A stretch of 64,000 nucleotides of DNA from Trichosphaerium sp. ATCC 40318 (Eukaryota; Protista; Tubulinea), in NCBI GenBank assembly GCA_038496445.1, contig JALMLS010000596.1, positions 186,001-250,000 of the forward strand, given 5' to 3'. The notes below the pieces were generated by a model, which worked only from the letters and a program-made list of their open reading frames with translations, did no database searches and was not told the DNA's origin. Positions 38,700-64,000 of this stretch are shown here, piece after piece (position 1 is the first letter of the stretch; each line of letters opens with the position of its first letter). Both the position numbers and the translations under genes were made by a program.

Positions 38700-40395
38700 T
38701 CAGGGTACATACGGTTTTATACACCCAGATAAAGCGTGTTCACTGAGTTTTTCGCATACAGAAGCTTGGCTATTTTTAGAAAACCGTTCATGTCGCGGAT
38801 CACTACAAAGAAAAAATTATTTTACAAGAAACAATTCAGCCTTCTGTACGTTGTAAACCTTACTCCTAGTTCCAAAATACCATCATCATCGTTTAGAGCG
38901 CCACTTAATCTTCCGATAGACCGCCCAAGCTGACGTCTAGTATATGTAGGAGTGCTGTAGTTTGTTGTTGACTATTTTGTTAGTAGGCAGTCAAGTTATT
39001 TAATCACCAGACTTACCGCAGTGTTGCAATATTGTCCACCAACTACAATAAATTCGGCACAATTATGAAACAGCACTGAGACTGTTGTGGTGCCACAACA
39101 TTGAGGTATTGCATTGATTTTTGGGAACGTATTCCAAGGACTTATACTGCATTCTGGAGACTCACGCTCATTGTTCCATTCCACATGGCCTTGGTAGAAA
39201 GTTATTTTACAAAAAAGAGGCTTGGTAGATACCAGTTGTTGTGTAGATCAAAGCGTTTTCTATGGTCACGTGCGCGTTCTACAAGAAAAATGAGCTTTTT
39301 TGGTTTTTCATTTCAAGAACCGTTTACCACGTCAGATTCAAAGAACACGTTTATACCCATTACCACTAAATTATAATCAAACAGCTTAAGATATACAAGT
39401 GGTTACATACCATCTGCAATGTAGCCTGCAGTTTTTTCAACATTTCCTCCACTTGCTCGGTAGTATGCTACGGTTATAGCTACACTCTTACAGAAAATGA
39501 ATTGTTATAGTATCGTATAGTACGTACAATAGTAATCTCTTGCATTTCTGAGGGACATGTTTCAGGTGGAGGTGATAGCGGAAGAGTAGCACCTTCAGGG
39601 TAACCTCTTTTTAAGGTTTTTAAGTCTTTGTTTGTTCCTCTACGAAGAACAAGGTGTCAACAACTACTTTCTCAAATTATGTACCTGAATACCAAGTGAC
39701 TATCATTTCCTATCAAAGACTTGTGACGAGGATGCATGAATGACACATGTCTGGTTGTTTCATCAGTATCATACTAATGTGATGCGAAGGAACGTGGTAC
39801 CTATCAAGAGCATCAAAGAAGTGCCAATGACCTTGTTCGGATTGCCAGAAGCCAGAGAAAGTACCATCAGAGTATTGAGTAACTCGAAAATGTTGATGGT
39901 TCTCTCCAATCGCTTTGAACGTGTTTGAAGGTGCATCAATAAAAGTCACATTGTGTTCGTTTTGAATGGTAATCTACAACTCATTTCAGTTTTAGTCACG
40001 TGATTTGATGGTATTGTAATTGTATCTCCAAATATGATATTACCTTCGTATTCTTTGCGTAGGGAGAGTGTTTAATACAGGTGAAGCTCAACGTCTTGTT
40101 TGTATTGAAAAAAAGGTCGACGCGATGTTGTTTTGAATTTATTGCCTGATAAGCATCCACGTGCGTAAGAGATACTATTTAATGAGAAACTAGCAACGAA
40201 TCTACGCAAACGTACTTTTTGATATAGCTTCAAATTCATCCATATTGTCCCAAAACTCTTGGCTATAGCCCCACGTGAACGTGGTAAATATAAAGATACC
40301 TGATAAACCCATTTAGTATTCCATTTCATCCAATGCAAGGTAAAAGGCCCGCTAGTTGGACATTACGTACCTAAAGTTACGAGAAGCTTCCACAT
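38700..40395 (-). CDS. ADAM/reprolysin (M12B)-like pseudoprotease, copy A
   Basis: Signal peptide MWKLLVTLGIFIFTTFTWG, prodomain, then KR, LSPPPETCP, LFHNC, GRSIGRLSGALND at the HExxHxxGxxHD position, and ERFSKNSQASVC...GCIKP*. Confidence 0.75.
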
Positions 40396-40980
40396 GGTTG
40401 TTAGTAAAATAAAACAAATGTGATCTAACATTAATTTGTAAGGTAGAGTCTCGTTTTATTTAGATAACTGCGCAAACTTCGAAATGATATAGTGACAACT
40501 CAACGCAAGGACCCAGTATTTCAGAGCTTCTTCGTGTTTGAGGTGCAAAAGAGAATGATATTCTAAGTTGACTCGGATTCAGACGTTCTTACTGCGTCAA
40601 CCGAAGTAGTGCACTTAAAAAGAACATTTTTCACTCAAGCAAAGATTCTTACTACGCGGTTAAGGTCTTGCAGATTTTCTGCTCGCAACGGTGCCTTTTG
40701 CACCAAATAGGTACAGATGTGAGCAAGAACGTTCTGGCTCGCTTGTACATGCTGGGGCATACCAGGAATTCATACAAGACAATGACTCGGTTCTGCGTTC
40801 TATGAACTTACAAATTTCCCAACACTTGGTCTTTTGTAAACTAAGACTTGTCACCTTGCTACCGGGCAAATTGTACATCCCAGTGATATACGCCTCCTTT
40901 CGAAGAAATCACGTGATTGCTTAAAACAGTCACTTTAGTCATATTTAGTAGATACTACATTATAAAGCACACTCTTCTGT

Positions 40981-42405
40981 ATGTCTTTCAATAATCAATG
41001 TACGATAGTGCCCTACTGGGTTTCTTCTCATAAGTATTTAGGCACGCCTTTAAACCTAGAATCGCTTCCTTGTGATATACAGGTGTATATTAGCAGCTAT
41101 TGTAGCGAAGTGTTCGCTAAATGGTACGTTTCTTTTTTTCAAAAAAAATGTGACAGAGCGATAGGAACTTGTTGAGCAAATCTACTGCGACATCAACTCG
41201 CTACAATGAAAAGCTTAACAAAACCGGCGTTTGGTTGAAATGGCATTCAAACGGTAGATTGTCAGATAGTAGACACTTTGTTGATGGTATCGAACATGGA
41301 GCTTTACAAGTTTGGTTTGAGAATGGGCAAACAAGAGAAAAGTCTTTCAAAGAAGAAGGTTTGTTCGAAGGTGAAATAAAAACATGGTATGCCTCCGGAC
41401 AACTTGAATCACAGGGTTTCTATAAGTCTGGTAAGAAAGAAGGTACTTATAAGATTTGGCATGAAGGAGGACAACTCTACAAGGAAGCTATGTATTGTAA
41501 CAATGTACGTCATGGCTTGCTCCGTGAGTACTTTGAGAATGGGCAAATGGCTAGCTATGTGATGATTCAAAATGGAGTTGATAACGGCTTGGTTCACTAT
41601 TGGAATGAAGATGGACATATGATATTAAAGGGAACATTTGTGGACGCAAAGCCTGAAGGAAAGTTTGAAGAATGGTACACGTTACACTTTTTCCTCGTAC
41701 TTTCTTAACTTTGCTCTTTGCTTTGTATTTAGCTTAACCGTATGTAGGTATGACAATGGTAACCCCAAAGTATTGTGTTGGTTTTATTCGAACAAACGAG
41801 AAGGAAAGTTTAGCGAATGGCACGAAAATGGAGCAGTTGCGGTCCAGTGTAATTATGTTGATGAGGAATTTGATGGAGAATACAAAGCATGGTATTCCAA
41901 TGGTCAATTAGAAAAAGAGTGTACCTATGTAAAAGGAGCCCTTGACGGAGAACACAAGATGTGGTATGACAACGGTCAATTAAAGCACTGTAGAACTTAT
42001 GTCAATGGCAAACATGACGGTACTACCAGAAACTGGTATGCCAATGGTCAAATACAATTTGAGTGTCAAGTTGTTAATGATTTAAGACATGGTACTTTTA
42101 AGCGTTGGGATAAAAGCGGTGTTCTTCTTGAGGAGAGGAAGTATATTAATGGAGTCCAAAATGGTCTGTATCAATGTTGGTCATCAAGTGGTAGCTTAAT
42201 CCTCAAGTGCACTTATTTGGACGGACGGCAACATGGTAATTGCTTTCAGAGAACTAGCAATGGTTCTATTGAAAGTCATTATAAGCACGGTCAACTACAT
42301 GGTGACTATAAAGAAGTGAATGCAAAAGGTGATATTTTAAATGAGAGCAGTTACGAAAATGGTCAAGTAAAATCAAAGCCACTTAATTTTGGAACATGGA
42401 TCTAA
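40981..42405 (+). CDS. F-box-like + MORN2 repeat protein with about 3 introns
   Basis: LESLPCDIQVYISSYCSEVFAKWNLLSK...RYNEKLNKTG is homologous to the N-terminus of 27460-28476. Many WxxNGQL repeats follow. Confidence 0.88.
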
Positions 42406-42888
42406 TGTAGCTGAGTCTTAAAATTGAATAAATTCATTATAAAATTTCCGTTGTGGTTTTTTTCATAGTGCATCATTTCACATAATCCTAGACGGTCAAC
42501 AATACTATTTCTTACCACAACAGATGCCTAGAGTTGTTCTTGTTGGTAGAGAATTTTTCTCTAAGCAGTTGATGAAAAAGTAAAAAATGTGTCAGTAACA
42601 CAGCAGTCAGCTACTCGCCTGAAACTCCCGTATATGATAGGTTAAGGTTTGTATTTCAACGAGAAGTTCGAAACAGATATGCACAATAAGTACATTATAT
42701 GCAATTATCACAGAAAATATGTGCCGTGATCTTTTCAGTAAAAAAGGAACTTTTAATTCCTTATTTAAGAGCATCAACACCTTTTTCCGTCGAATGAATA
42801 GGCCAAATCTACTTAAACAGTGATGTACTACTTATCCCTGATGTGAGATCGCAAACAACGCCGTTTAAAAAACAATTTTGTTCACTAT

Positions 42889-42987
42889 CTTATGCAACAT
42901 CCCAAACAGCCAAAAATGATGTATTGTATTCAACATGCGCGTGTAGTATGTATGTATCATTTTTGGCTGTTTGGGATGTTGCATAAG
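42889..42987 (+). ncRNA. Candidate hairpin RNA (pre-miRNA-like), or tiny palindromic element
   Basis: Perfect 32-bp inverted repeat (42889-42920 / 42956-42987). The 35-nt spacer also folds using G-U pairs on the + strand. Intergenic. Confidence 0.45.
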
Positions 42988-43498
42988 TTAGAAAGAGGAA
43001 AAACACTGTAAACATTTTTAGAAAAAGTGCCCTACAACAAATGCAAAGCGTTTAGCTCGGTTTTATATCGCTAATCAAGATCAATAAGCGGAACTTGACG
43101 TTTTTAGCGGAGCCACAACTAACGTTTTAGTGTGCGCACTCAGGTTCGATGCAATAGTACTCTTTATACACTTTCAAGGTATAAATGATGAACAATAAAA
43201 ACCTAGTGAGAAGATTTTCACATCTTACAATAACGTCATACCACAAAAACAGTAAAACGTATTTATTTTTTTACACGGCTACAGGTTTATATTAAGCTCT
43301 CATACTTACTGTGTAGATTCAAAGCATATAGCGCTTACACCATAGCACATTCAACTGCTTAGCGAAAAATTCTCTAAAAGCTATGAATAATATTACAGTG
43401 TTTGGCTACAAAGTCAAGTTTAAGTCAATCACACTTTCTAACGTATTATTAACCACATACAACACAAAATCACTCACCACTCTTTGTAAAACCGTTAT

Positions 43499-44637
43499 AT
43501 GGCTGCACCAATACTACCTGGAGAGATAGTGTACCATATACTCGCGTTTGTAGATGATTTATACACAAAGTATGCTGTAGCGCTTGTATGCTCGTATTGG
43601 CGCACTGCCATAATATCTACAACAACGACAGTTGATGTTTCGTATCTTTGCCTAGATGGAGAAAAACACGAACGAATGGGAACTTTTCCAAGATACTCAA
43701 AATTGAGGTCTGTTTTTCATATTTTTAAAAATGTGGACACTGTTAAGGTACCCTTTTGGCTGTCAAAATACCTGCTTAAGTGTGTTAGCTTTGTGATATC
43801 ATTGTTGGCTTCAGAACATTCTGGAAACTGGGTAAGAAATTAGACAAGTTGTTGTGCAATTTTGTCTTTGATTTTTTTGTTTTGCATACTTGTTAACTAT
43901 TCTTTTTTGTTTCAGGATGTGCTGTGCTTTCAGGTAAATTAGATCTTGGAGAACGGATAGGGTTTGGTGCTTATCATGAGTACATGAGCCTTGCTGATCT
44001 TAAAACACAAGAATTCAATGATAGCCCAGAAGTACAAGGTATGCATGAGTGCTACTTTTTCAACCTTCTGTAAGCTTTTTATAATATTATTGATAGAGAT
44101 TCGAGCCACTGGATGTACGCCCATCACCAGTATAGTCATATCAGACTGTAATATAAAGTACTGGTATTGTATGTAGCACTTAGCAATGGTTTGGGGCAAA
44201 GTAAGTCTAACATTGTAATTATAGCCTCATGGCCATCTGTGATGTTTGCCGGAGTTACATTATTTAGAGCTTTGGCAACTAAGGATGCTGTATTTTCAGT
44301 AGATGTTTCAGGTTCTACTGGAGAAGGCTTGAAATATCTGTACAAGGAAGGATATAGTACGTTAATACAAATAATTGTATGCCTTGTTTAAGGTTTCTCC
44401 CTTTGTTTTTATTTCTTACCCTTTTGTGGCTTATATCGTTCACTAGAAGTATCACACCTTCCACTTTGCAATCTAGAAAAATGGACGTTGAACATGTCTG
44501 ATACAAACATACCAGAAGATGAAAAAAAAGGTGCGTAGAACTTTGCTTGGTTTTAACATGTTTTGACATGATTTTGTTCAGAAATACAAAGCATTATTCA
44601 TAGTTTACAGAAACAGGCATCACAATATCGGATTTAG
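43499..44637 (+). CDS. F-box protein with uncharacterised C-terminus
   Basis: ILPGEIVYHILAFV..YAVALVCSYWR is an F-box. Downstream exons were assembled tentatively. Confidence 0.65.
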
Positions 44638-44885
44638 TAATAATGTACAAGTTTGTAGTTTCAATATCACGTGAATGAAGTGCCCTGACAGCCAAAGTTA
44701 AGAGGCTTTTCGAATTGACATTGATATCCACAATCAACTGAACTCCCAGCTTCCAGCACTACAAAGTTTAATGGCTTGCTAACCATTCAGTACTTGCCGG
44801 AGTCGATGCTGTGTTTCCTTTATTTCAGCTGTTAGACGTACAGTGTTATTGATAATCTAATAATCTTTTATAAACTGGCTAAAAT

Positions 44886-46962
44886 TTAGTTGTCTGATTC
44901 TACACTTTCTTCCATTGTTGTAGCTAGTGGCTCAGGTTGTTCCGATTGACCAGTTGCCAATACTGTTTTACTTTCATTTGTATATCTATCATTTGTTTTC
45001 AAGTGCATATCTACGATTGTACGCCTACATAATTATTATTAATTAAATGCATTAAGTGCTGTGTACTTACTTAGATGTTGAATTACAGCTAGGACCCCTT
45101 ATGTCTTTGGATTTTATTTGTGGTGGACGTAGAGAAACAAGTTGTACAGTTATAAGTGAGCTCATCATTAGCCAAAAAAACCAAAACCATGTTACATAAC
45201 CAGTAAGATGTCTAGTTGCTCCCAACCTTTGTAAACGTTAGCCTGATACGTACCACAATAAATATGTTGTTGAGTACTCACAAGAACGAAATATAGAGGA
45301 TATAGACTGAGCATATGTTGACAACAACTGCCACAAGTTGTACTTTTATCTACACAAAGTAACCCTGTCAGCACATGATGAAGATGTAAAAGTTGACCAT
45401 ACCCGAAACAACTCAAGTGTTGATTGTTTGCTTTGAGCTTGTAACTTCTTTACTCTTCGTTGTAATCGATACAACGTAACACAACAGTATACAAGCACCA
45501 ATGTGTACCCCAAAAAGTATAGCGTAGGCGATATAAATTGGACAAATGTTGGGACCTATAAAGAAGTAAATCTTGATAGATTTTGCAGCTGTTGGTGACC
45601 TGAACGAAAACGTTTGTTATTGAAATTATTAGCTCTTGAACAATAAGAAAGGTGACCCAAGCATAGAATATCCATCTTGGTACGTGCGTTAGAGGCATTA
45701 AATGTAATAAATTGTATACCTAAAACGTGGTAGTCCAGGATGCACTTGAAACTTGAGTGACTTTAAAAGAGTATGCCTACAGAATTCACAAAGTTGTCAA
45801 CAAAAAAGAGTCCTGAATAGTATTTACACGTGCCACCACAAAGACATTAGAAATAGAGGTGCTATAATTATAGGCAATGGTAATGTTTCCATGACACCTG
45901 AAGTAATATGAAATCGTAGCTTGGCAAATTATTACTACCTACAAGCCAATAAGGACTTATTCTTCGACATCCCAACGGATCAATAGAGATATACAGCATA
46001 ATGCCTTTGTTAATTTAGTTTTTAACAACTTGAAGCGGCCACCATACCCATTGAAGCAGCAAGGCAGAGTAGTAAACAGCACAGGCCAACAGTTCTCTTA
46101 CAGCCGTCATAGAACCTGACAAGTACAACAATTCTTTTCACATGACAAAAGAGTGAACAATAAAGCAACACTATTTAGGCCTACCTAAATACTGCAAATC
46201 CGGCGTTGAACAAAGAAAATGCGATCAAAGAAAGCTGCCACACCCACATCCATCCAGATGAGAATAAATCTATAAACTCGTTGCGCTCTGATAAACAACG
46301 TTAACAGCAACCAAAAGAAGTAATCCATTTTCTGCAACAATACCTGTAGTAAGTGTTATGAATACAGTTTTGTTTAGTGACAGTATGCTCTCAATGTCCT
46401 TTATAATAACTGTTACTATAGGTACGTTGATATCGCTGGTATCACTTCCGTCAATTTCAAACATTTCCTAAATTGTGTGACCATTCATTCCATGTTTCAT
46501 TTCGTATTACGTTTCCTGACTTGCGATCACGTGGAGGTCCTAATACCCCACATATAATCGCGATAGCACCTTGATTTTGTATTCTACGATACTCCGGTTC
46601 ATATGGACGAGTACAACCGCTCAATAGAACTATTTTACCTACACAAAACGTAAATGAACATCATTAAAGTGGTGGAACTGAGTGGCTATTTGGAATTACT
46701 TTTTTTCTGGTTTAGCATATTGTTGGATACCTGTTTTGTTTGATTCTGACGCTTCTACAAGCTGTCCGAATATGGGTTCGAAATTTATAGTATTACCATC
46801 GTATTTCTGAGGCCATACGCGTATAGATGTGTTTGTAGATGTGTAAGGTGTTAAAACAGTTATTGATCCAAACACGTGTAAAATGAACTGCAAAATTGCT
46901 AAAATGAATTAGAAGGACTGATTTATAAGCATAGTACCTAGTGAACATATGCACCGGTTCAT
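44886..46962 (-). CDS. PA-domain multi-pass (GPCR-like) membrane protein
   Basis: Signal MNRCICSLAILQFILHVFG, PA-like GKIVLLSGC...IQNQGAIAII...VPIVTV, then several hydrophobic TM exons and a polar C-tail. Confidence 0.65.
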
Positions 46963-47153
46963 AATTCGGGGATTGAAATGGATACAAGTCTAAGCGTCGG
47001 AGTTTCATTTGTCCCGAGCAACTTAAGATCTTTCTTGAAGGTATTGCAGTAAGAGACGTAAAAACCCAAGTATCTTCACTCCCATCTGACACTCTCTCCT
47101 GTTTTAGAAGACAAGTAATAAAAACAAGGACTTTTTAACATAATTGTTTAGTG

Positions 47154-48833
47154 ATGAGAAAGTGTGTCGCTTTAGGTATCACGTGTCTTTGATGCTCGCA
47201 CTAATACAATTTTTAGTATTATGCCTGGTAGTTTCTGCTGTTGGCTACAGCAAACAGTTTTGGGATAAAACAAACGAGTTTACAGTTATATCCAATAGTA
47301 CGTCGCTGTTTACAAGCGGGTTTTGGAATACTAATGGCCATGACTACAAATAAAAATCCTGTAGTATCGCTTACGCACGTGGATGAGCCCCATACTGGTT
47401 TACATAAAATTAAAATATCATTTGAAAATAATGATCACATTCAATTTACGTGTGTCAGTCACTCACCATACGCTAAAAATACAAAGGTACGGACATTGTA
47501 CAGCATATAAAGTTATAATAAAAGTAGATTGCAGTGCGAAATGGCTCTAACACGACATTTATTGACGCACCTTCAAACACGTTCAAAGCGATTGGAGAGA
47601 ACCATCAACATTTTACAGTTACTCAATACTCTGATGGTACATTCTCTGGCTTCTGGCAATCCGAACAAGGTCATTGGCACTTCTTTGATGCTCTTGATAG
47701 GTACCACGTTCCACATCACCTTAGTATGTTACTGATGTAAAACTAGACATGTGTCGTTCATGCATCCTCGTCACAAATCTTTGATTGGAAATGGTTCTCA
47801 CTTACTATTCAGGTAATTATCATACCACTATCCTGTTTACCTTACGTCTGTTCAGGGAGCCTGGGGTCAATAAAATACCCAAGAGAGATTACCCACGAGG
47901 TGACGATCTTCCTCTGTCGCCGCCACCGCCTACATGTCCTCAAATATTGTATGAGGTTACAATTGTACGCTTATTTATTTACCTTGGCGATTTTTTGTAA
48001 CCACTGGTAGAGTATAGCAGTATCAGTATCTTACTATGACATATTTAAGAACATCGAGGAAGTAGCTAACTATTTAGCAACTGGTATGTAGCTTTTCTAT
48101 TTCTCATTTATTTCTTACATCTTGTTAAAGGAGTCATGTCAGCCAACGTGTTTCTTGAATCTGATTTGGTACTTTTTTTTCAAAAAGTTTGTTGTTGTCT
48201 TCTTATTGTTAATGCCTTTCCAGAATATACATGCTACTATTGAAAATGCTGTCATATACACAACAAAAGGTGGGGATAAAATCACATCATATTGATTAGC
48301 TAATTGCTATAACAACAGGAGGAGAAAGTTGGAACGATTTCCGAGGTTCTCAAGCTTGCGTTGTAAACCCTGTTCATATCTTCGCTGACAACTGGCAAAA
48401 TGTCATCCCACAATGCTGTGGTAAATCAACAATGGGTCTAATGTTCCATAATTGTGAAGAGTTTTTTGGTGGGCATGCTGGCATAGTTTGCAGTGAGGTG
48501 AGTACCAAATCTTTTCCAGATAACCAGTTTTTAACCCAAGTCATTAGTTTCCAAATACAGGATCACATCAACGCTATGGCAATATTTACACGACAAGACG
48601 TGCTATAGCAAACAGTGTTGGATCTGCGCTAGGTGGTTTACAAGGCGGCGATGGCGTGATGGGACTTATTTTTCCTGACTCGCACGTTTTTTTTTTCTCA
48701 AAAATAACACGTTAAATTTCTTTCTAGGGATGAAAGACACGACAGATTTTCTAAAGCTAGTCAAACTGCAATATGTCCTATTATATCGGAAATAATTTCC
48801 AAGCAATGCTTGAAGCCGTTTGTTGTAGCATGA
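47154..48833 (+). CDS. ADAM/reprolysin-like pseudoprotease, copy B
   Basis: Signal peptide and shared prodomain exon, then PKR, LSPPPPTCP, MFHNC, ANSVGSALGGLQG-GDGVM and DRFSKASQTAIC...QCLKP. Confidence 0.75.
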
Positions 48834-49009
48834 TAAAGCTCTCAGAGTGAAGCATATGTAGCTTTCATTTTCAATCAAATAAACTTGTGTATATGCTACG
48901 GTGTTTCATGGTTTCATGGTAGTGGTGGTGATTGAAATCAATGGACTTTCAAAGAAAGGGCAGCTAGTTTTATTGTTGTCAATTTATCTTGTAACAAAAC
49001 GCACCACAC

Positions 49010-50274
49010 ATGAAGATATCGTTCTTTGTATTGCTTGTAAGGTATGTGATGGTTTTTCGTTGTGCCACAGAGTGGTTGGTTTAAAACTAACAACATAAAG
49101 CGTATTGGCTGCTTATTGCGTTGATTTGTCCATGTACATATGCGCGCCAGATAGTACGCGCTTTTAACTGTCTTTTTGCGTTTTTCCGTTTTTTTCAGCT
49201 AGCGCACATGATTTATTTGTAGTTTTCTTATTTCTTGTCAAATAGTGGCCAACTGTGGTATCTCGGTCAGTAGTTGTACATTAGACAATAAGACACCAGA
49301 TGGAGACTGTTTTGCATTAGACCCTTGTATAGGTTTATCAGGCGCTACACACGGATCATTCGTAGCTAGTGGCGGCGGGTACGCTTTGTTTTGCGCTTTT
49401 GTTTTGTTCCCATTTGTTACCCTTTTTTTAGATATCAACTGCGAGGTTTCTCTGACGCTAACTGCAACACACAAGTTGGAAATGTAGATGATATAAGCTT
49501 AACAAACGCTGGTTGTACCACAAGAGTCCCAGCTTGGACCTGTTCGTTTATCATTCGAGAGGGAACACCAGCAATCACAGGAAACGCTTGGAATGGTTGG
49601 CAGTACACAGGTTTGCAGCTTACCGTGGATGATAGTGCTAAAGGATTCCTTTTCTAGATGATTGTTCATTGGCGGCATCAAAAAGTGATGCTCCAGTACC
49701 TTTTGGAGACTGTTCTTTGGTTCCGTTTTGTGACAGTAATAGCAATTGGATAAAAGTCACAGCAAAAGCAGGCGCAAGTGATATGGTTGAAATTAACCAG
49801 TTTCGATCTCAATCAGACTGTATGAACAACATGAACAGTGTACCTAGTCTTGAACGTGTCATATTTGATCTTGAAGCTCGTCCTCAGGGTTCATGCACGC
49901 GATTCAGTTGTAATTCTACCTGTATGCAAACAGTCTTATTTTTATTTCAATATACTAATCGCTAATATTTGTTTGCAGCTCTAACTCCATTCCTTTCATT
50001 CAATTATGCATCTCTGGGAAACGTACCTTCCATGGTTGGACAACCATCAACAGGGATGACACCATCTACAAGCAATACGCCAACTACATCAGGTACAGGA
50101 AACACACCAACAACTGTAATGACGCCATCAGCTTCTACAACCAATACACCAACTACTATGACAACACCGACAACTACACTAGCACCAACAACTACACTAT
50201 CACCAGCATCCTTTTCTCAACAAATACTACCACATGTATTTGTTGTACTTGTCTTATTTACACTGCTCTTGTAA
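49010..50274 (+). CDS. Cell-surface protein with Cys-rich N-domain, Thr/Pro stalk and GPI-type tail, paralog G1
   Basis: Signal MKISFFVLLVSFLISCQIVA, CGISVSSCTLDNKTPDGDCFALDPC, WTCSFIIREGTP, a TTP-rich stalk and a hydrophobic C-terminus after a Ser-rich site. Confidence 0.8.
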
Positions 50275-50613
50275 CTTAAAAAAATCGTTTTGACTTTCAA
50301 TCACGTCTTGAGATTTGCGCAAAAGAGAAACGTACTATAAAGATCAGGATTGCAGTCAACAACATGACAGATCCACGAATAACAATTTTTGTTACCACTA
50401 CTGCACATCCTATTTCGGTTTTATTTCTAAACTTCCAAAAAACTTGATCTAATGTTGGCCATTTTAAAGGCCGCTAAAACATTTCCTAAAATAAACCAAA
50501 TTTCTAGCGCTAGTTCACACTAACTGATATCAGAAATTGACGCTAGTTTTTGGGTTTTTTCGTACCTTATTAACACAAAGCAACGCTTCCCCTTTTCTAG
50601 CGCTTAACCACAC

Positions 50614-52121
50614 ATGAAGATATCTATTATAGTATTGCTTGTAAGGTATGTGATGGCTTTTCGTTGCGTTAACACGTATAACGTAACCCCAAAAGGGGTT
50701 CTTAAATGAGTTGTTTGAAACTAAAGTATCGTCAAGCGTATTGGCTGCTTATTGCGTTGACTTGTCCATGTACATATGCGCACCTGATGGTACGCGCTTT
50801 TAACTGTTTTTTGCGTTTTTCCGTTTTTTTCAGCTAGCGCACGTGATTTATTTGCAGTTTTCTTATTTCTTGTTAAACAGAGGCCAACTGTGGTATCTCG
50901 GTCAGTAGTTGTACATTAGACAATAAGACACCAGATGGTGGCTGTTTTGCATTAGACCCTTGTATAGGTTTATCAGGCGCCACACACGGGTCATTCGTAG
51001 CTAGTGGCGGCGGGTACGCTTTGTTTTACGCTACTTTTGTTTTATTCCCATTTGTTACCCTTTTTTTAGATATCAACTACGAGGTTTCTCTGACGCTAAC
51101 TGCAACAATGATGCTAGCAGTGTTAATGGCGCAAGCTTAACAAACGCTGGTTGTACCACAAGAATCCCTTCTTGGACTTGCTCGTTTATCATTCGCGAGG
51201 GAACACCAGCAATCACTGGAAATGCTTGGAACGGTTGGCAATACGCAGGTATGCCTTGGACAGATGTAAAAGTAGTAACTTTTGTCCGTAGGTGATTGCT
51301 CAACAATGACAACAATGACTCGTGGCCCTGTTGCTTTTGGAGAGTGTGGTTTAAGTCCATACTGTAGTAGCGATTGGATCAAAGTCACAGAAAAAGCGGG
51401 TGTTAGTGATAGAGTTGACATTGAACACTTTGAATCTCAATCAGACTGTATGAGTGACATGAACAGAAGAGGTTCTGGCGAAGCTACCATATTTGATCTC
51501 GAAGCACGTCCACAAGGTTCATGCTCTTCATTCCCATGTTCTTCTGGTAATTAAACTTGTTAAATTATTGTTTAACATTTGTGTACAGGTCAATCTCCTT
51601 TGGTTGCGTTCAGTTATGCGTCTATCGGAGTGCCTGCCATGGTTCCTTCAACAGGAATGACTCCAACATCTGGAAATATGCCAACTACAATGCCGCCAAC
51701 TCAGTCGGTTACAGGAAATACACCAACAACAGGAATGACACCATCAGCTTCTACAAGCAATACGCCAACTACATCAGGTAGTACACCATCAGCGTCCACA
51801 GGAAACACACCATCAACAGGAATGACGCCATCAGCTTCTACAAGCAATACGCCAACTACTATGACAATACCGACAACTACAATGACGCCAACTACATCGG
51901 GTAGTACACCATCAGCGTCCACAGGAAACACGCCATCAACAGGAATGATGCCATCAGGGTCAAGTGCTAATACGCCAACTACAATGACAACGCCAACAGC
52001 AATGAATACACCGACAACTACACTAGCACCAACAACTACACTATCACCAGCATCTTTTTCTCAACAAATACTACCACATGTATTTGTTACGGTTGTCTTG
52101 TTATTTACACTACTCCTGTAA
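50614..52121 (+). CDS. Cell-surface GPI-type mucin-stalk protein, paralog G2
   Basis: Tandem duplicate of G1 with a longer stalk of GMTPSAST/GNTPST repeats and a near-identical tail SPASFSQQILPHVFV. Confidence 0.8.
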
Positions 52122-52285
52122 ACCAAATAAAGAATAACTTGTGCTACTTTTTACTGTTTTGCGTGAAGTTGCTTAAGAACGAATTCGTTGGTTGATAAAA
52201 AAAAGATTGATTCTCAATAATCACGTGACAATCGTCATTTCTTTCTTCTGCACAAGTCAATTTAAAATTGTTTAGTGACATTACA

Positions 52286-54300
52286 ATGAAAGCGCTTACT
52301 TTCCACGGCAAGCAAACTATAAAGGCAAGTCATTTGCGAACTAACTTCACCCAAACAAGTTCCACCGTTTCGAAACGTCTAAACGCCTCCACTAGTATAC
52401 ACAAGTACCAAAACCTTCAATTCAAGCGCCTACAGATGCCATAATAAAAGTTGAGCAAACAGCGATATGTGGATCAGATTTACATCCTTACCACGAGAGG
52501 GAGGAGGGTTTGGACCATGGTACGCCAGCTCAAACGCAAAACAGAATTTTTTAAAGAAAACTTCAAAAAAACTTTCCGTGTTGGTGCATAAACTAACTAT
52601 CTTAGGTACGTACGTACCTATTTCCACGCTTACCATTGCTACGGAATACTAAGAATACCCACAGAGTGATGGGACATGAGCACGTTGGCATTGTATTGGA
52701 GGTACACCGATTTTTGTTCATATGATTTCATTGAGAAAAACTGGTTCTGTTCAGGTAGGAGATCAAGTCAAATCCATCAAAGTAGGTGATGCAGTGTGTT
52801 GCCCATTTACAACATCATGTGGGAAATGCTTTTACTGCCTGAAAGGCACGTCAAGTTCCATAAATATGTCAAACCGACATATTCCAAAAATAGTCTTGTT
52901 GATTTGTTGTATTACTTATTATGCTATCAAGGTCTCACATGCCGGTGTGAGAATGGTCAATTATTAGGATGGGTAGAGAACGGAGTTGGTTTACATGGAG
53001 TACAGGCAGAATACGTCCGTGTACCGGTATGAACAGCATTCGAATACATGTATTGAACTATTTTGTAACTTTTTATTGCCAGCTTGCAGATACGACCTTA
53101 ATGCGTATTCCAGAAGGTGCGCATAGAGCTTTAGTATATTGAGGTAACATTAAGAATAGGATTAAGTCTATCCCAAGGGTTACTGCTAGGTACTTATGAA
53201 AAGTGATTAGAAATTCTTATTACCATTTTCCGCTTTAATTCTTCCTTTTTAGGTGATGTTTTTTCGACGGGATACTATTGTGCCGATAGAGCAGATATTA
53301 CTTCAGAATCTGTGGCAGTAGTGATCGGCTGTGGTCCTGTTGGTAAGTGTTGGATATGTCTTTTTTAAGACTTACAAAGTGGTAGGATTAATGAGCATCG
53401 TGGGTGCTCAAAGTCTTGGAGCAGATACTGTATACGCTATAGACTGTGTAAAAGAGCGAATGGTAGGTTTAAATTGTACAGAATTTATGTGTTAAATCTT
53501 TATTTGCGTTTAGGATCTTGCTGCAAAGTTCGGAGCAAAGCCACTCAACTTTAAGACTCAAGATATAATAGCTATTGTTAAAGGTATTATTACCACTGTA
53601 AACTAATTAAGTTAATGTGAATTGTATAGATGCAACGGATGGGCGAGGCGCAGATTGCGTTCTTGAAGGTACAACGAAAGTTAACAACATAAAGCATAAA
53701 TTCACACTTCTGTTTTAGCTGTTGGTAGCCCACAAGCAACTCGCACCGCTTTTGATATGTTAAGACCTGGTGGAACATTATCAACAGTCGGTGTACATAC
53801 AGGTATTTAGTTTAAACCACAAATCAATCTGTTGCTAAATTACATTGAAGAGAGCACGTTGAACTTTAATCCTGTCGAAGCTTATGATAAGAATATTACG
53901 TTCAGAATTGGTAAGTCACTTTTGCGATAAGGTTGTTTACGTATGTACTATTGTAGGACGTTGCCCAGCAAGACATTACATGTCTTTATTGCCTAAGGTT
54001 ATAAAAGAGTTTAAAACTGATGTATCTCAAGTGTTCTCTCACAAGATGCAGTTGTCTGAAGGTAACGAGGACGAACACCCAGGACTGCCTACTACTTATG
54101 CTTTGAGTTTTTTCTTAAAACATTCTTGTGTATTTCTTGAACACATAATGATAATGTATGGTTTAGGTCCTGAGGCTTATAAAATCTTTGATGCAAAACA
54201 ACAGGCACGTAATTTTTTTTTCAGTGGGTTTTTTTTACCGTTGCTTGTATGTTTACCTTACTGGTTATAGGGGTGTACTAAAATTTTACTTGTGCCATAG
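52286..54300 (+). CDS. Zinc-dependent medium-chain alcohol/formaldehyde dehydrogenase-like protein
   Basis: AICGSDLHPY, GTVMGHE, CGKCFYCLKGLTCRC, GVQAEYVRVP, GDVFSTGY, VIGCGPVG and GRGADCVLEAVG. Confidence 0.93.
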
Positions 54301-54827
54301 ATGATTCAATATAATAGGCGTATAATATAAATGTATTATCAGAGTGCTTTTTTTTTTTTTTGGTTGAACGTTTCTAGTTTAAAACAAATTCTTGACACTG
54401 GACCAATCAAATAGATTTGAGCCATAATCAACACTCTCTTAAATAAGTGGGAAACTAAAACCCAGTCATAATTCTTGAAAGAAAATTCAATGAAACTTGC
54501 TTTTTCATTTCTTTGGCATTGTGATCATGCAGCCCGCAATTTTTTTCGTACGATTTTAGTTTGAGCATAAAAGGAGTTTGAAATTTCCTTCTCATGTGTT
54601 TCTCGGCCTATTGGCTTTGATCATGTGTAGTAAAAGTTAAGAATGGGTTAAACCCCAGGCAAGTGACCACGTGTCACTTTGTCTTTAACCCATTATTTGG
54701 AAAACTAATGGTGATTGACATTGCTTGCAATGTCAGTTCCCATACAGTGATTATCCTAGCATAGCACTACCCGCTAGAGTCATATTCACTTTTTTTACTG
54801 TATTTGCAACCTGTGAAGAAATCTCTT

Positions 54828-56538: not shown

Positions 56539-56713
56539 TACAGTTTAACGGCGAGTGGAAACAAATACGAAAAAACTGACTTAAGTTATTTAATAGTTAA
56601 GCAAACAGTCGACGCTCAAAAAAGAGATTTTTGTTGTAAAAGTTCCATTTGGGCAAGTTGCGCTAGTAGGCTAAAACACACAGTTGGTTTTTATACAATA
56701 CATCACGCTTGTT

Positions 56714-58303
56714 ATGAATAAATTCTTCGCTATTGTTCTTGTCAGGCACGTATACGACGTTCCAGAGTTTGTAGACGCGGAAGAGCATTAGATACAGCGC
56801 TCTCGCTTTAATTAAACTTGGCACCAAAATTTACACGATTTAGCCTTTATGCTGTCACGTGTATGGATATATCTATGTACAGATGTTCGGGAGATGAATG
56901 TACGTCATTTGAAAGAAAAGATTACGCTAGCACGTGACTTGTTTTCCGTAATTAAAGGTTAATTAAACAACTTATTTGGTTTGTTTAGTGCGCGGTTGTG
57001 GCATTTCTGTAGCTCAATGTACCCTTGATAATAAAACTCCTTTGGGTGATTGCTTCGCACTACAGCCTTGCTTTGTTATAGCAGGCGCTACGCATGCAAA
57101 GTTCGTTACTGATCCAAACGGGTAAGGTACATCTTTCTACACTAAAGATTAAATTATTTTTCGCGTGTAGGTTTCGCATTCAACCATTCTCTGACGCTGC
57201 TTGTAATTTCACAGTAGGCGGTGGAATAGGTCCGTTCGACACCGACAGTCCATGCACAACTTTTCAAAATGACTGGACTTGCTCGTTCCTTATCCGTGAA
57301 GGCACACCTATGATAGTTGGTACGGCACTACTTATCTTCGCAAATATTTTTAACAATAAAATAAGGTGATTCCTGGACAGGCTGGGAGTTTCCAGGTACA
57401 TCAATTAGTCTACTGAAACTCTTACACTCACTCAAGGCGGTTGTAACCTGCTTCCGCAGATGAAGCGTGACATTACAAATTTTGATGAGTGCGCGCTTAG
57501 CCCATATTGTACAACAGGCGATTGGGTTAAAGTTTCACCAGTGCCTGGGATGAGTTACAATATCAGCATTACGCATTACACATCTGAGGACTTTTGCAAC
57601 CGTGATGTTAATTCAAGAGTTCAATATGCAGGTATTTTCGATTTGGAGGTAACGCCTACTGGAGCTTGCTCTACTTTTCAATGTGGTGGATGTATGTTTA
57701 TTTTCCTTTTTTTGTTAAATTCACTCTTTAACATTTCGTTTACAGCTCAATCCCTCCCCACCGCTTTCAAGTATGCAGTTACAGGCTCTCCATTCGTTCA
57801 AACACCAAACAGTGGCGTGTCTCCAATAGGAGCAACACCTACCTCAGGCACAACTCCTGTAGGCACCAATACGCCAACATCCGGTAATACGCCTGTAGTT
57901 GGCGCTGTACCAGCATCCGGTAATACACCTGTAGTTGGCGCTGTACCTGCATCTGGTATTACACCCAGCAGCGATACTCCAGCGACACCTTCAACTGGAA
58001 CCCCAACAATACCTACAACTGTCATCACACCAAGTACTGTCAACACACCTACTACTGTCAATACACCAAGTACTGTCAATACACCAAGTACTGTCAACAC
58101 ACCAAGTACTGTCAATACGCCAAGTACTGTAATCATACCATCAAGTTCAGTAGCACCAATTGACTCAAACGTACCATCAGCTCGTTCAAGTGGCATTACC
58201 TTGGTAAACTTTTTGCTACTTTTGTGATAAATTTTGTTAACATTGTTTCATTTAGGTTCCTTTGTCATTTGTTTTATTTGTAATGGTGATTTTTGCCTTT
58301 TAA
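56714..58303 (+). CDS. Cell-surface GPI-type mucin-stalk protein, paralog G3
   Basis: CGISVAQCTLDNKTPLGDCFALQPC and WTCSFLIREGTP, a stalk with GNTPVVGAVPAS x2 and TPSTVN x about 6, and a spliced tail GITLVPLSFVLFVMVIFAF*. Confidence 0.8.
58026..58133 (+). repeat. Coding 18-bp tandem repeat (TPSTVN)
   Basis: ACACCAAGTACTGTCAAY repeated about 6 times inside the G3 stalk exon. Confidence 0.9.
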
Positions 58304-58453
58304 TTAATAAGTTAAATAAATAGTGTATTGTCAGCATACTACAAACGTTTTACAATCAGTAAAGTAGCTCCACAGAGCCAAGGAGATTCACATTTTAAAA
58401 AAAAAGATGAATAGTCGATGACGTATTAACTAACTTGACTTTTAGTACGAAAC

Positions 58454-60182
58454 ATGGGGAAGCTTGTAGCGGCCATATGTACGCGTTTTTATACAGTTTG
58501 GCATAGATTTAAATGTTTTTCTACCTTCGCACAGGTATCTTGATTTTCACCACGTTCACGTGGGGATATAACCAAGAGTTTTGGGACAATATGGATGAAT
58601 TTGAAGTCATTTCCAAAAGTACGTTGTCGTGTTGGGTTACTACAACTAGTTACTCATTAAATAGTATCTCTTACGCACGTGGATGCTTATCAAGCAATAA
58701 ATTCAAAACAACATCGCGTCGACCTTTTTTTCAATACAAATAAGACTCTGAGCTTCACCTGTATTAAACAGTCTCCCTACGCAAAAAATACAAAGGTAAT
58801 ATCATATTTGGGAGATACAATTACGATCTATCAAAATCACGTGGACATAACTGAATGATTTGTAGATTACCATACAAAACGAACACAATGTGACTTTTAT
58901 TGATGCACCTTCAAACACATTCAAAGCGATTGGAGGGGACCATCAACATTTTAGAGTTACTCAATACTCTGATGGTACTTTCTCTGGCTTTTGGCAATCC
59001 GAGCAAGGTCATTGGCACTTCTTCGATGCTCTTGATAGGTACCAAATATTGCCACAATAGGATATTACAAATGAATAAAATTAGGCACGTGTTGTTCATG
59101 CATCCTCGTCACAAGTCTTTGATTGGAAATGGTTCTCATTTAGTATTCAGGTAATTAATATTGTACACTTTGTTTGCACTCACGTTGTACAATTTTAGAG
59201 AACCTGAATTATCGTATCAAAACACAAAGAGAGGTCCAGCTATTGGAGACAAGGCACCTCTATCGCCTCCACCTGATCCTTGTCCATCACAAGTCCATGA
59301 AGTTACACTTGTGAGTTTGATGTATGAAGTGTATTACATTTAACAATGTGTACAATAGAGTGTTATTGTAACTGTTGCTTACGTAAGGGCTTCTGGAAGT
59401 ATTGAAAAAGCTGCAAATCGCATTGCAGAAGGTACTTGTTGTAGATTTATACTCTTTTCAATCTCTTATCATATTAATTAGCTGTCACAAGTCTGAATGT
59501 TTGGTTTGAAATGGATGTGGTAACGATAAAGAAGACCTTTCCTGTTTCTAACTTTTGATTCTTGTTCTAGAGATTGCATGTCACGATTCAAAACGCAATA
59601 ATATACACCACCCCAGGTACCTTGATTTCGTGAATACAAGTAAACTTAACTGTTGTTTTCAAGGAAAAGTATCATGGAACGTGGAACGCTCCGATAACTG
59701 TGAGAATCCTTTTCAAACTTTTGTTTCCGAATGGTACAACGAGATACCTCAATGCTGTGGAAATACAGCGATGGGTATATTATTCCATAACTGTGCCTCA
59801 CATTCTGCTGTGACGGGTGCTAGAAAATTGTGTGGAAACGTTCGTATTCCGATTTAGTTTTTTGGTTGTATGTTCACACCTAACTGTTTCACTAGCCAGC
59901 CTTACCGGGAATGACTGTTAATTACCGTGATCCTGTACGTACCCGCCGTTCAATTACATGGGGTATCGGGTTAATGACCAGAGCACCTGTTGACAGCGAT
60001 GGTATTTTGGAAGGGACAACCAGTAATGAGTATGTCAGTTTTTTATGCAACATCACCAATGGTTATTATTGTTTAGAGGTTCCGGTTATGACAGGTTTTC
60101 AAAAATAAGTCAAGGATTTGTATGTGATGCCATTCCTGGTTTAATCGCTACAAACTGTTTGAAACCCTATGAATCAACATAA
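58454..60182 (+). CDS. ADAM/reprolysin-like pseudoprotease, copy C
   Basis: MGKLVAAICILIFTTFTWG, TKR, LSPPPDPCP, LFHNC, TWGIGLMTRAPVD-SDGIL and DRFSKISQGFVC...NCLKP. Confidence 0.75.
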
Positions 60183-60766
60183 AACATAGAACTTTTAACT
60201 CACTTTTTTTGATGAACTTGAAAAAAAGAAAAATTTCGGCAAAACTAATAAAAAAAATCATGTGACTTTAAAAAGGCCTTAGTCAAATTAGCTAAGAAAG
60301 CAGAGCACTCAGTATAAAATTTCGAGTAAGTAATAATTTGAATGAGATACAGTTACGGACTCGGCCCAATATTTTTTTTATCGGTCCGTTAGGCGTAATT
60401 TAAACGCACGTGATTTTCCAAGTTTTGTTATATTTGTGGTGGCGTTTATAAAGCCTACAATAATATTGCTTACATATTTTGATCTGCCTTGTCGATACTA
60501 TTCCAGTGCTAGCATGGATAGGTCAAGTTAATTGTATTTACACGTTGCTTTGAATTGATGTATTTGCATTCTTATTTATGTTACAACGCTGTGAGTGCGT
60601 AGTACTAGCCAATGAGGAACTTTTAAACTAAAAACTAAAGAACTAGCGTGTCTATTTGTTACAAGGTTTATATAGCTTTCCTTGTGATACAAATTCTTTT
60701 CACGCAAAAAAGTTCACACAAGATAAACCTTCAACAAAAAAAAACAAAGGTTAACTTGCGAACAGG

Positions 60767-62498
60767 ATGTGGAGCGCGAAAACAGTTTGTACGTTGCCAG
60801 TTGTTTTTCGTACAATGCTAAACCTCACTATCGAAGGCATTGCAGTATTATTCATCCTATCGGCTAGAGGATACAATCACGAGTATTGGAACACCATAGA
60901 ACACTTTGAAGTGATTACAAAAGGTACCGTCACATTCTGGTTTATCTTGTAACGCTATGTAGTATCGCTAACGCACGTGAATACATCATACCACCAGGTC
61001 ATGCTTCATTTCGATTCAAACAAAACAATGAGCTTCAACTGCATCAAACACTCGGTATACGCAAAGAATACAAAGGTATCGTGTAATAGCATTAATAATG
61101 AACTTTTACAACTGCTCTGCTTATTTTTGATATCGAAAAATAAATTTACTCACCTTTCTGCTGTAGATTACCATTCACAATGAACACAATGTGACAGTTA
61201 TAGATGCACCTTCAAACACGTTCAAAGCGATTGGAGAGAACCATCAACATTTTCGAGTTACTCAATACTCTGATGGTACTTTCTCTGGCTTTTGGCAATC
61301 CGAACAAGGTCATTGGCACTTCTTTGATGCTCTTGATAGGTACCACGCTCCTTCACATCACTTAGTATGTTACTGAGGGAAAAAACTAGACATGTGTCGT
61401 TCATGCATCCTCATCACAAGTCTTTGATTGGAAATGGTTCTCATTTGGTTTTCAGGTAGATTATGACGCTTTGTTTGAACTCACGTTTTTCAATTTTAGA
61501 GAACCTGAATTAACGTTTCAAACCACAAAGAGAGGTCCAGCTGTTGGAGATAAGGCACCTCTTTCGCCTCCTCCTAATCCTTGTCCATCACAAGTCCATG
61601 AAGTTACACTTGTGAGTTTGATGTATGAACTGTATTACCGTTAACAATGTGTACAAATAGAGTATTGCTGTAACTGTCGCATACGTAAGGGCTTCTGGAA
61701 GTATTGAAAAAGCTGCAAATCGTATTGCAGAAGGTACTGCTGTAGATTTATAAACTATCAGTTTAATCTCATTATAAATAGCTGTCATGAGCATAAATGT
61801 TTGGCTTGAAATGGATGTGGTAAAGAAAATAACCGAGAGCATTCCATTAACTTTTTGATCCTCATTCTAGAGACTGCACGCCACAATTCAAAATGCCGTA
61901 ATATACACCAGCCCAGGTACCTTGATTTCGTAAATACTCTGCCAAGGCTTTGCAGCTTAAATTAACTCATTAACTTTGTTCAAGGAAAAGTATCATGGAA
62001 TGTTGAACGCTCCGATAGCTGTGAGAACCCTTTAAATTCTTTTGTTTCCGAATGGTACAACGAGATACCTCAATGCTGTGGAAATACAGCGATGGGTATA
62101 TTATTCCATAACTGTGGGTCATATTCTACTGTGACAAGTGCTAGATTATTGTGTGGAAACGTTCGTATTCCGATTTAGTTTTTTGGTATGTTCACCTAAC
62201 TGTTTCACTAGCCAGCCTTACCAGCAGCAACAGCCTATTACCGTGATCCTACGGCTACACGCCGTAAAATTGGATTTGCTATTGGTATTAGTACAGTGAC
62301 AGAATTGCCTCCTAGTGAGAAAGATGGCATTTTTGGAGGGGCAAACAGTAATGAGTATGTCAACACTTTTATTCAACATCGCCAAGTTTATTATTGTTTA
62401 GCGATCCTGGTTTTGACAGGTTTTCAAAAGATAGCCAACAATTAGTTTGTAATGGAATTGATGGATTAATCTACAGAGGGTGTTTGAAGCCCTTATAA
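60767..62498 (+). CDS. ADAM/reprolysin-like pseudoprotease, copy D
   Basis: Same exon structure. The site region reads GFAIGISTVTELPPSEKDGIF, followed by DRFSKDSQQLVC...GCLKP. Confidence 0.75.
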
Positions 62499-62979
62499 AT
62501 CAAAATAAAATTTAACATATTTTTCAGTCTTAGTTTTTGCCTTCCAGAGCTTGTATTATCGATCTTGGTTCCATTTTGATAGGCAATACAGCTGCTGTCG
62601 TGTTGTAAAGAAACAACTTATTGACAAAAGCAGGTCAATCGCTCCAAAACAAACTCTAAATGATGCTTGCAACATGCCTCAATCACTGTTACAAAGTACG
62701 ACAAAACTATAATGAAAATAGTTTACGGTCTTCAGAAGATCTTCTCGCCTGAAAAAAAAAACCCCGTGTCGCCAGTAACCTTTAAATCTATTGGGAAGGT
62801 TGCACATTCTGTTTGTGGCAGATACTGAAGTATCACGATTAAATTATCAACTCTAGTACTTTGAATTGTATCTCACTGACTAACAATAAAGACAAATAAA
62901 CAAGAGAGAAGCTGGTAAAACAAAAACCCTTTTAAAAACTACATTTGTAATAAGATGGTTAAGTGCTGTATGGTAAGTT

Positions 62980-64000
62980 TTATATCGATTCATATTCATA
63001 GGGCTTCAAGCACTTTGTAGTAATTAACCCAGGAATGGCATTACATACTATTTCTTGACTCTCTTTTGAAAACCTGTCAAAACCGGAGTCTCTACACAAT
63101 AATTAACTTGGAGTATTGGTGAAAAAAAACTAGCATACTCGTCGAGTTTCAGAATACCTTCCAAAATACCATCACTGTCTTTAGGTGCCCCTGTCATTCT
63201 ACCCATACCCCATCCGATTGAACGACGGGTTTGTATAAGGTTACGGCTAACAATTACCAATATAGGGGCTGGCTAGCGAAAGACTAAGGTACAACCAATG
63301 GACCAACATACAAAAATACTTACATTTCCGCACAACATTCCATTCTGTGTTTTGGTTGTTTGTCGATGTGAAGAACAGCTATGGAATAATATACCCATCG
63401 CTGTAGTTCCACAGCATTGAGGTATCACATTGTACCATTCATCACGAAATGCATAAAAAGGATCTGCACAGTCTTCTGAGTCTTCCTCATTCCATGACAC
63501 TTTTCCTTGAAAACAAAGTTAATGAGTTTATACTGTAGAGAAACACTTGTATTCACGAAATCAAGGTACCCGGGGTGGTGTATATTATTGCGTTTTGAAT
63601 TGTGGCATGCAGTCTCTAGAACAAGGATTAAAAAGCGTTAAAATAGGAAAGGACTAGTCGTTTTTTTCTTTACCACATCCATTTCAAACCAAACATTAAT
63701 CGAATCGACAGCTAATTAATATGATAAGAGATTGAAAAGAGTATAAATCTACAACAAGTACCTTCTGCAATACGATTTGCAGCTTTTTCAATACTTCCAG
63801 AAGCCCTTACGTATGCGACAGTTACAGCAATACTCTATTTGTACACATTGTTAAATGTAATACACTTCATACATCAAACTCACAAGTGTAACTTCATGGA
63901 CTTCTGATGGACAAGGATCAGGAGGAGGCGAAAGAGGTGCCTTGTCTCCAACAGCTGGACCTCTCTTTGTGGTTTGAAACGCTAATTCAGGTTCTCTACA
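62980..64000 (-). CDS. ADAM/reprolysin-like pseudoprotease, copy E (5' part outside window)
   Basis: TKR, LSPPPDPCP, LFHSC, GWGMGRMTGAPKD-SDGIL and DRFSKESQEIVC...KCLKP. Confidence 0.75.

Follow-up and report, generated by a model that had tools for sequence, protein, structure and literature searches.

A lineage-specific clade of predicted catalytically dead reprolysin-like proteins in the amoeba Trichosphaerium

What are genes kept for that are built like those of secreted zinc proteases and have lost the zinc site in every copy? This question is raised by a 64,000-nucleotide stretch of DNA from the amoeba Trichosphaerium sp. ATCC 40318 (hereafter the window; contig JALMLS010000596.1, here C68), which corresponds to C68:186001-250000 of a 70.3-Mb, 642-contig genome (~37% G+C, abundant short introns). 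A first reading of the letters alone (the original prediction) had described five paralogs in it, here called A to E, as catalytically dead ADAM/reprolysin-like proteins whose former cleft had become a variable binding surface. Here, we report that these genes belong to a lineage-specific clade whose origin lies within the family of active reprolysin-like zinc proteases of the same amoeba. In the reading that we prefer, and to which we assign a probability of about 0.7, they encode secreted-type non-catalytic binders that descend from these proteases, lost catalysis once, let their cleft drift and act via conserved surfaces. Dead metalloproteases are well studied in animals, with ADAM22, ADAM23 and ADAM11 acting at synapses and ADAM2 and ADAM7 in sperm; to our knowledge, they have hardly been described in protists.

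The former zinc site

At the position of the ADAM zinc motif AHEIGHNFGAxHD, the original prediction had placed five diverged 13-residue strings, and translation of the corresponding coordinates returned all of them exactly there (Table 1). The loss extends to the whole clade: the HExxHxxGxxHD motif is gone, with the glutamate and the second histidine absent from 15 of 15 modelled dead copies, the first histidine kept only in two copies on contig C17, and the third histidine (with the aspartate) only in one copy on contig C6. What stands in their place varies from copy to copy (W/R/N/F/H/Q/K at the first histidine; G/S/A/T/L/F at the glutamate). Most dead copies carry an IGW[GST]IG[RLI] core; divergence from it has gone further in A, B, D and some intermediates. 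Since no member has the catalytic glutamate or the second zinc-binding histidine, the dead clade is predicted to be unable to work as metzincin proteases, and its proteins would probably not bind zinc.

The methionine that follows the site, which we call the Met-turn residue by alignment to matrix metalloproteinase (MMP) and reprolysin sequences, is replaced by leucine in copies A, C and E and by phenylalanine in D; copy B keeps it (DGVMG). The statement that only copy B does so is therefore correct for the window but not for the family, as the methionine also persists in copy H, in the copies on contigs C67 and C564, and at loci L004 and L006.

Descent from active paralogs

The best-conserved exon of these genes, which encodes the propeptide region, has 39 matches in the genome, or about 31 loci after removal of allelic contigs. 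Fourteen closest and seven intermediate loci are without HExxH, and all ten more distant loci that we fetched carry GHE[IFT]GHxxGxxHD followed by G[IM][ML] at the homologous exon. The same genome holds at least 14 active paralogs with GHExGHxxGxxHD..GIM, in which the spacing is HD(x2-5)GIM (GIL in one copy). Their zinc exons match the Pfam families Reprolysin_5, _2 and _4, with a single 48-residue exon reaching 29.1 bits (the curated cut-off of Reprolysin_5, PF13688, is 27 bits). At L014, an upstream exon matches Reprolysin_5 positions 45-118 (26.4 bits) and is collinear with the zinc exon at 132-163 (19.2 bits), and a six-frame genome scan with PF13688 gave 26 matches, among which active paralogs scored up to 55.2 bits (C58:265113). 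The matrixin family Peptidase_M10 did not reach its cut-off of 24: the best active exon scored 23.4 bits, below its own 29.1 bits for Reprolysin_5, and exons upstream of the active zinc exon match Reprolysin models only. Searched against PDB sequences, the zinc exon gave weak matches to MMP-1, karilysin, fragilysin, snake venom metalloproteinases (SVMPs) and ADAMs.

The dead proteins are tied to these active ones along the entire catalytic domain. A hidden Markov model built from the catalytic domains of ten active paralogs only recovered 15 of 15 dead domains at 87-120 bits, and hhalign aligned dead with active domains at 99.9% over 193 columns (27% identity). The two groups share the series CP..WN..C..NC..C..RR.IG....G...D..GI..RFS..C..C, the propeptide-like domain and, for one active subgroup, most intron positions; the active gene L007 has the same exon boundaries as the dead genes in the catalytic part. 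Language-model neighbours, which we treated as a lead only, were all Reprolysin clusters for the dead domain (0.94) and, for the N-terminal domain, Pep_M12B_propep (ADAM propeptide) clusters in 98 of 100 cases (0.93). As read from these alignments, the homology is unambiguous and spans the catalytic domain, not just the propeptide. Descent from a Reprolysin_5-type metalloprotease, as originally proposed, is thus borne out by the model scores, the profile alignment and the tree described below. Unlike the dead clade, the active paralogs keep GHExGHxxGCxHD..GIM, are found by Pfam and in many cases have C-terminal additions. These include a ricin-B lectin domain in the gene on contig C21 (45 bits; L010:1537-1989, minus strand) and downstream Cys-rich CGxxxCGxC modules in the genes on contigs C58, C43, C26 and C46 (L013-L016).

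Phylogeny and turnover of copies

The dead clade comprises 17 loci: 15 intact-looking genes, one frameshifted gene and one relic. In a maximum-likelihood (ML) tree of 25 family members, a single branch (support 100/99) sets the 15 dead genes apart; they are nested among active ones and, with the L011/13-16 group as root, are sister to the L007-9 group. Because they form one clade, none keeps the glutamate or the second histidine, and most share the IGW core, catalysis was probably lost once, in the ancestor of the clade, and stepwise decay and drift followed. We rejected independent loss in each copy on the same grounds. Of the original claim that the ligands and the glutamate had been lost differently in every copy, the loss itself holds for all window copies, but the independence that it suggests is not supported. 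The earliest-branching dead member, L005 (C6:382200-386500), is without the PQCCG cysteine pair, has an active-like GYLLHTC and retains the third histidine and the aspartate in GAPHD; it gives the impression of a copy caught early in its decay.

Besides G (Table 1), L022 and L023 are relics, and contig C17 also carries relics. The small contigs C344, C466, C265, C401, C98, C185 and C430 repeat family loci at 98-100% identity (C344 is identical to copy A, and C466 holds an allele of H). Family loci are thus duplicated on allelic haplotigs, and raw copy counts therefore overstate the size of the family by about one-fifth.

Transcription and splicing

Spliced transcripts exist for both window and non-window members of the clade. 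In contigs of X1, a public run from 2015 that is stored as contigs, seven of the 11 introns of copy C are removed exactly at the modelled GT..AG borders. These include the introns 59839|59896 and 60029|60077, which flank the exon with the dead site, and a contig of 308 nt matches that exon and the adjoining ones with 0-1 mismatches. The copy D intron between 61339 and 61390 is absent from three X1 contigs. Two loose contig ends match only the exon that follows, at 47857 in copy B and at 39639 in copy A, which argues that A and B are spliced too. Outside the window, P0002 and P0004 (MMETSP) and P0001 (a JGI transcript contig) are spliced transcripts of the dead-clade genes on contigs C49 and C447, from the same or a very close strain.

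No transcript that we examined (X1 contigs for A, B, C and D) brings in an exon supplying HExxH. Two of the three observations that the original prediction had named as fatal to it—silent genes and a restoring exon—are therefore not what we found, since spliced transcripts exist and none carries such an exon.

Selection on the dead clade

Purifying selection acts on the coding sequences of the dead clade, most strongly on the propeptide-like domain and on the N-terminal half of the protease-like domain. Pairwise Nei-Gojobori estimates over whole genes gave ratios of nonsynonymous to synonymous divergence (dN/dS, omega) of 0.16-0.50, with synonymous divergence (dS) from 0.33 to >1. In three phylogenetically independent young pairs, omega was 0.38 overall (p ~7e-20 vs neutrality), with 0.19 in the propeptide core, 0.25 in the N-terminal half of the protease-like domain, and 0.79 in the block that corresponds to residues 294-357 of copy C (Fisher p=2.7e-4 vs the rest; 0.79-0.98 in young pairs). 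We then fitted Goldman-Yang-type codon models of our own writing by ML to nine close copies (357 codons); the models let branch lengths vary by a common scale only and assume no gene conversion between tandem copies. A single ratio (M0) gave an omega of 0.29. With two partitions, omega was 0.68 in the block vs 0.24 elsewhere; a shared value was rejected (p=3e-34), as was an omega of 1 in the block (p=1e-5).

From the alignment to the active paralogs and the general metzincin plan, we take this fast block to be the substrate-binding edge strand, the zinc helix and the Met-turn loop, i.e., the whole cleft. Its 13 zinc-site columns form a 99.4th-percentile conservation window in the active paralogs vs a 12th-percentile one in the dead clade, in which conservation is lowest in the blocks at copy C residues 296-324, immediately before the former zinc helix. 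The dead copies have conserved splice sites, a conserved KR site and the full set of eight conserved cysteines in the mature part. The propeptide-like domain (58866-59150 of the window and homologous exons) is the most conserved part of both dead and active proteins; it gave no Pfam match and no sequence relative outside the source organism.

A per-codon test of the kind that the original prediction had proposed did not detect positive selection among the nine copies (M2a vs M1a: 2dlnL = 5.55, p = 0.062). A posterior above 0.8 was reached at one site only, copy C residue 327, just before the former helix; three of the four sites with P(omega>1)>0.5 lie in the block, where the mean posterior omega is 0.99. 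A block that evolves fast but significantly below neutrality, together with the non-significant site model, argues for a cleft freed of catalytic constraint in an otherwise conserved protein, not for a cleft driven to diversify. The proposed repurposing of the cleft as a variable binding surface is thus not supported: variability peaks upstream of the helix, and the block is neither neutral nor demonstrably under positive selection.

Proposed function of the dead proteins

Being homologous to an active enzyme, having lost its catalytic residues, being expressed and evolving at an omega of 0.29, the family is, as judged from these data, one of predicted pseudoenzymes (pseudopeptidases). The predicted protein layout is a signal peptide, an M12B-propeptide-like domain, the KR site and a reprolysin-like domain. 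The original description of secreted, proteolytically matured pseudoproteases thus stands in its sequence features—signal peptide, propeptide-like domain, KR and dead site—with secretion and cleavage at KR as predictions from them.

Under the preferred reading, catalysis would have been lost a single time in the clade ancestor, after which the cleft elements (the edge strand after ..FHNC, the former zinc helix and the Met-turn loop) would have shed most constraint and drifted, with insertions and deletions. The eight-cysteine scaffold, the TRR..IG..G..DG framework and the propeptide-like domain would have been retained. The proteins would enter the secretory pathway, probably be cut after KR, and bind non-catalytically, with conserved surfaces and not the dead cleft making the contacts. 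They might plausibly partner or regulate the active paralogs, or the substrates of these. Binding via conserved surfaces, possibly to active paralogs, is what the pattern of selection and the animal precedents suggest.

Several points weigh against this reading. No dead locus is among the 26 six-frame matches to PF13688 in the genome, P0002 scored only 13 bits against Reprolysin_5, below the cut-off, and AlphaFold2 on P0002 with a three-row alignment (all full-length sequences to hand) reached a mean pLDDT of 32. The frameshifted copy and the several relics indicate that members do decay. The borderline M2a result, in which the cleft block holds three of four candidate sites, is compatible with a degree of diversifying selection. 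The RNA label of X1 is a guess, and the gene models come from our own aligner, with transcript-verified introns being the seven of copy C and single ones of A, B and D only. Finally, secretion, KR cleavage and the loss of zinc binding are inferred from sequence.

Among the alternatives, the one that fares best is that the dead cleft is a variable recognition surface under diversifying selection, with which the proteins would recognise prey or self, or work as an inhibitor decoy or toxin-like binder. The cleft block is indeed the fastest-evolving part of the protein, both in the young pairs and in the partition model, its posterior omega and candidate sites point the same way, and the genes form a tandem array with birth and death of copies. 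We nevertheless consider this explanation unlikely, given a block omega below 1, a non-significant test with a single well-supported site, and a propeptide-like domain, rather than the surroundings of the cleft, as the best-conserved part; moreover, simple loss of catalytic constraint predicts the same pattern, and the best-studied dead ADAM, ADAM22, binds its ligand LGI1 on the domain surface and not at the pseudo-active site (PMC11266112). Slightly more doubtful still is a fuller version, in which the tandem family provides variable binders of prey, kin or foreign proteases on a metzincin scaffold, with the cleft block as a diversifying recognition surface kept latent under the conserved propeptide.

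It is improbable that the dead clade is functionless, its members being inactivated protease duplicates on their way to becoming pseudogenes. Copy F, with its 1-nt deletion and truncated last exon, the relics G, L022 and L023, and the near-neutral cleft block of the young pairs would fit such a course, but the 12-exon reading frames of 15 copies have stayed open even though synonymous divergence ranges from 0.3 to >1, and omega is 0.19-0.25 across most of the protein (p ~1e-19 vs neutrality, 0.29 overall). The eight cysteines, KR and splice sites are likewise conserved, and the transcripts are spliced. That the proteins remain hydrolases or metal-binding enzymes via other residues is highly improbable: single ligands persist in the copies on C17 and C6, but the general-base glutamate and the second histidine are missing from every copy, and the residues replacing the first histidine and the glutamate differ from copy to copy, so that there is no alternative conserved catalytic set.

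Relation to known pseudopeptidases

Pseudopeptidases of the M12 family are known from animals: ADAM2, 7, 11, 18, 22, 23, 29 and 32 and C. elegans unc-71 have degenerate motifs and act by binding (PMC11266112). Like these, the amoeba proteins combine an M12B-type propeptide with a metalloprotease-like domain in which HExxHxxGxxHD is degenerate, and are kept by selection; the animal proteins act through protein-protein binding, which for the amoeba proteins is our proposal. They differ in that animal ADAMs are membrane proteins with disintegrin, cysteine-rich, EGF and transmembrane (TM) parts and usually keep the Met-turn, whereas the amoeba proteins end right after the protease-like domain, have mostly lost the methionine and have gained the PQCCG cysteine pair. 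The amoeba family is, furthermore, a single lineage-specific expansion of about 15 genes with an independent origin within its own protease family.

In layout, the amoeba proteins resemble class P-I SVMPs, which are secreted, consist of signal peptide, propeptide and reprolysin domain only and are multigene, tandemly duplicated and fast-evolving. Natural SVMP variants with substituted zinc motifs, i.e., catalytically inactive homologues, have been described (PMC5086652). Unlike the amoeba proteins, SVMPs are animal venom proteins of which most copies are active; the inactive ones described are of class P-II, with a disintegrin domain, and in sequence the two groups are related only as members of the M12B superfamily. 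The kind of protein is therefore already known (M12B pseudopeptidases); protist origin, P-I-like layout, lost methionine, CC pair and the expansion to about 15 genes set this family apart.

Relatives elsewhere were not detected. Among 1.84 billion representatives, a profile of the propeptide exon matched P0001, P0002 and P0004 and otherwise only ten unrelated repeat proteins. P0002 and alignment A4 gave no relatives beyond the same three among 5.8 billion proteins, and a scan of metagenome contigs, from which records of this genome may be missing, found none. Pfam searches with single exons of copies C and B returned no meaningful matches, and P0002 had no match among PDB sequences. Being invisible to Pfam and without detectable database relatives other than these three transcript ORFs, the dead-clade genes would be called 'hypothetical' by routine annotation. 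In the literature, we found no paper on amoebal or protist dead reprolysins, nor on this clade.

The whole path can be read in one genome, from active parents through an early-branching member with the third histidine and a 15-gene dead clade to decaying relics. It amounts to a natural experiment on what a secreted protease keeps and releases once cutting stops: propeptide, disulfide scaffold and N-terminal subdomain were kept, and every element of the cleft was released. With this tractable set of proteins, one can also ask whether pseudoproteases regulate the active enzymes to which they are related.

Gene models of the tandem copies

Gene models were obtained by three-frame reading and with a spliced protein-to-DNA aligner that we wrote. 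Each of the five window genes has 12 exons and encodes 381-387 residues, with introns of 33-91 nt (46-70 nt in copy C). Four complete paralogs and one truncated by the window edge are as originally predicted, with the exon count corrected from 11 to 12. The exon that had been overlooked is a conserved upstream mini-exon with the start codon (MWKLLVTL.., MGKLVAAI.. or MWSAKTV..), followed by a GTAC donor; its predicted place in A to E follows from conservation, and once it is included, all copies start with a hydrophobic signal peptide of typical form. The 5′ part of copy E reaches just past the window, to C68:250776 (window-equivalent 64776; L001:776).

The spliced translations of all five copies recover the predicted order of KR, LSPPPxxCP, WN, PQCCG..LFHNC and FSKxSQ..C..CLKP. 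KR is conserved among all dead copies (KK in one). In every copy, the stop codon follows about 30 residues beyond FSK..C..CLKP without a further domain, and the MMETSP open reading frames (ORFs) P0002 and P0004 terminate at the same point, in agreement with the predicted lack of a disintegrin or TM domain.

All spliced models are open, as predicted, copy B being in frame only with a GC donor at intron 10 (48682-48727, 46 nt; it starts GCACGT at 48682). We considered copy B as a pseudogene because of the frame problem between exons 10 and 11 and rejected this, since the putative 46-nt GC-AG intron, which rests on conservation, restores DERHDRFSK, sister genes use GC donors, and B is transcribed. 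Elsewhere in the family, the intron after the large propeptide exon begins GCAC in copy H (L001 ~8021-8066) and in the copy on contig C564 (L020 ~2777-2820), which suggests that GT-to-GC donor changes are tolerated in this genome.

Table 1 Dead-clade genes and former zinc sites in and just past the window. Coordinates are window positions unless preceded by a locus name.
Feature	Position	Strand	Description	Basis
Copy A	38700-40395	-	12 exons, 385 aa; exon 1 at 40371-40395; predicted signal peptide, propeptide-like domain, KR, dead reprolysin-like domain	Spliced model
Copy A, former zinc site	38888-38926	-	GRSIGRLSGALND; aligns with GHEIGHxxGCNHD of active paralogs	Direct translation
Copy B	47154-48833	+	12 exons, 382 aa; most diverged among window copies	Spliced model
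Copy B, former zinc site	48608-48646	+	ANSVGSALGGLQG; followed by DGVMG, Met kept	Direct translation
Copy C	58454-60182	+	12 exons, 387 aa	Spliced model
Copy C, exons	58454-58478, 58535-58618, 58665-58795, 58866-59038, 59085-59150, 59199-59310, 59359-59431, 59482-59519, 59571-59616, 59664-59839, 59896-60029, 60077-60182	+		
Copy C, dibasic KR	59227-59232	+	Putative convertase site between propeptide-like and protease-like domains	
Copy C, former zinc site	59956-59994	+	TWGIGLMTRAPVD; exon and both flanking junctions spanned by one X1 contig	Direct translation
Copy D	60767-62498	+	12 exons, 381 aa	Spliced model
Copy D, former zinc site	62272-62310	+	GFAIGISTVTELP; 3-residue insertion	Direct translation
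Copy E	62980-64000 within window	-	Exons 6-12 inside, exons 1-5 past the edge; full model 385 aa	
Copy E, former zinc site	63177-63215	-	GWGMGRMTGAPKD	Direct translation
Copy F	L001:3722-5415	-	C68, just past the window; 1-nt deletion in exon 6, last exon truncated	
Copy G	L001:6732-7100	+	C68, past the window; relic with exon 4 (propeptide exon) and a scrap of the last exon	
Copy H	L001:7430-9199	+	C68, past the window; intact, with GC donor	

Neighbouring genes

Interspersed among the dead-protease copies are three genes that are paralogs of each other but unrelated to the proteases, at 49245-50274, ~51000-52121 and 57094-58227 (all on the plus strand). They encode a small Cys-containing domain (..C.F[IL]IREGTP..), a long Thr/Pro-rich mucin-like stretch and a hydrophobic, GPI-like C-terminus; none of the three gave a Pfam match. 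Other neighbours, also on the plus strand, are a MORN-repeat protein (41169-42405; 98 bits), an F-box-like ORF (43499-43843) and exons of a zinc-type alcohol dehydrogenase (52722-53032).

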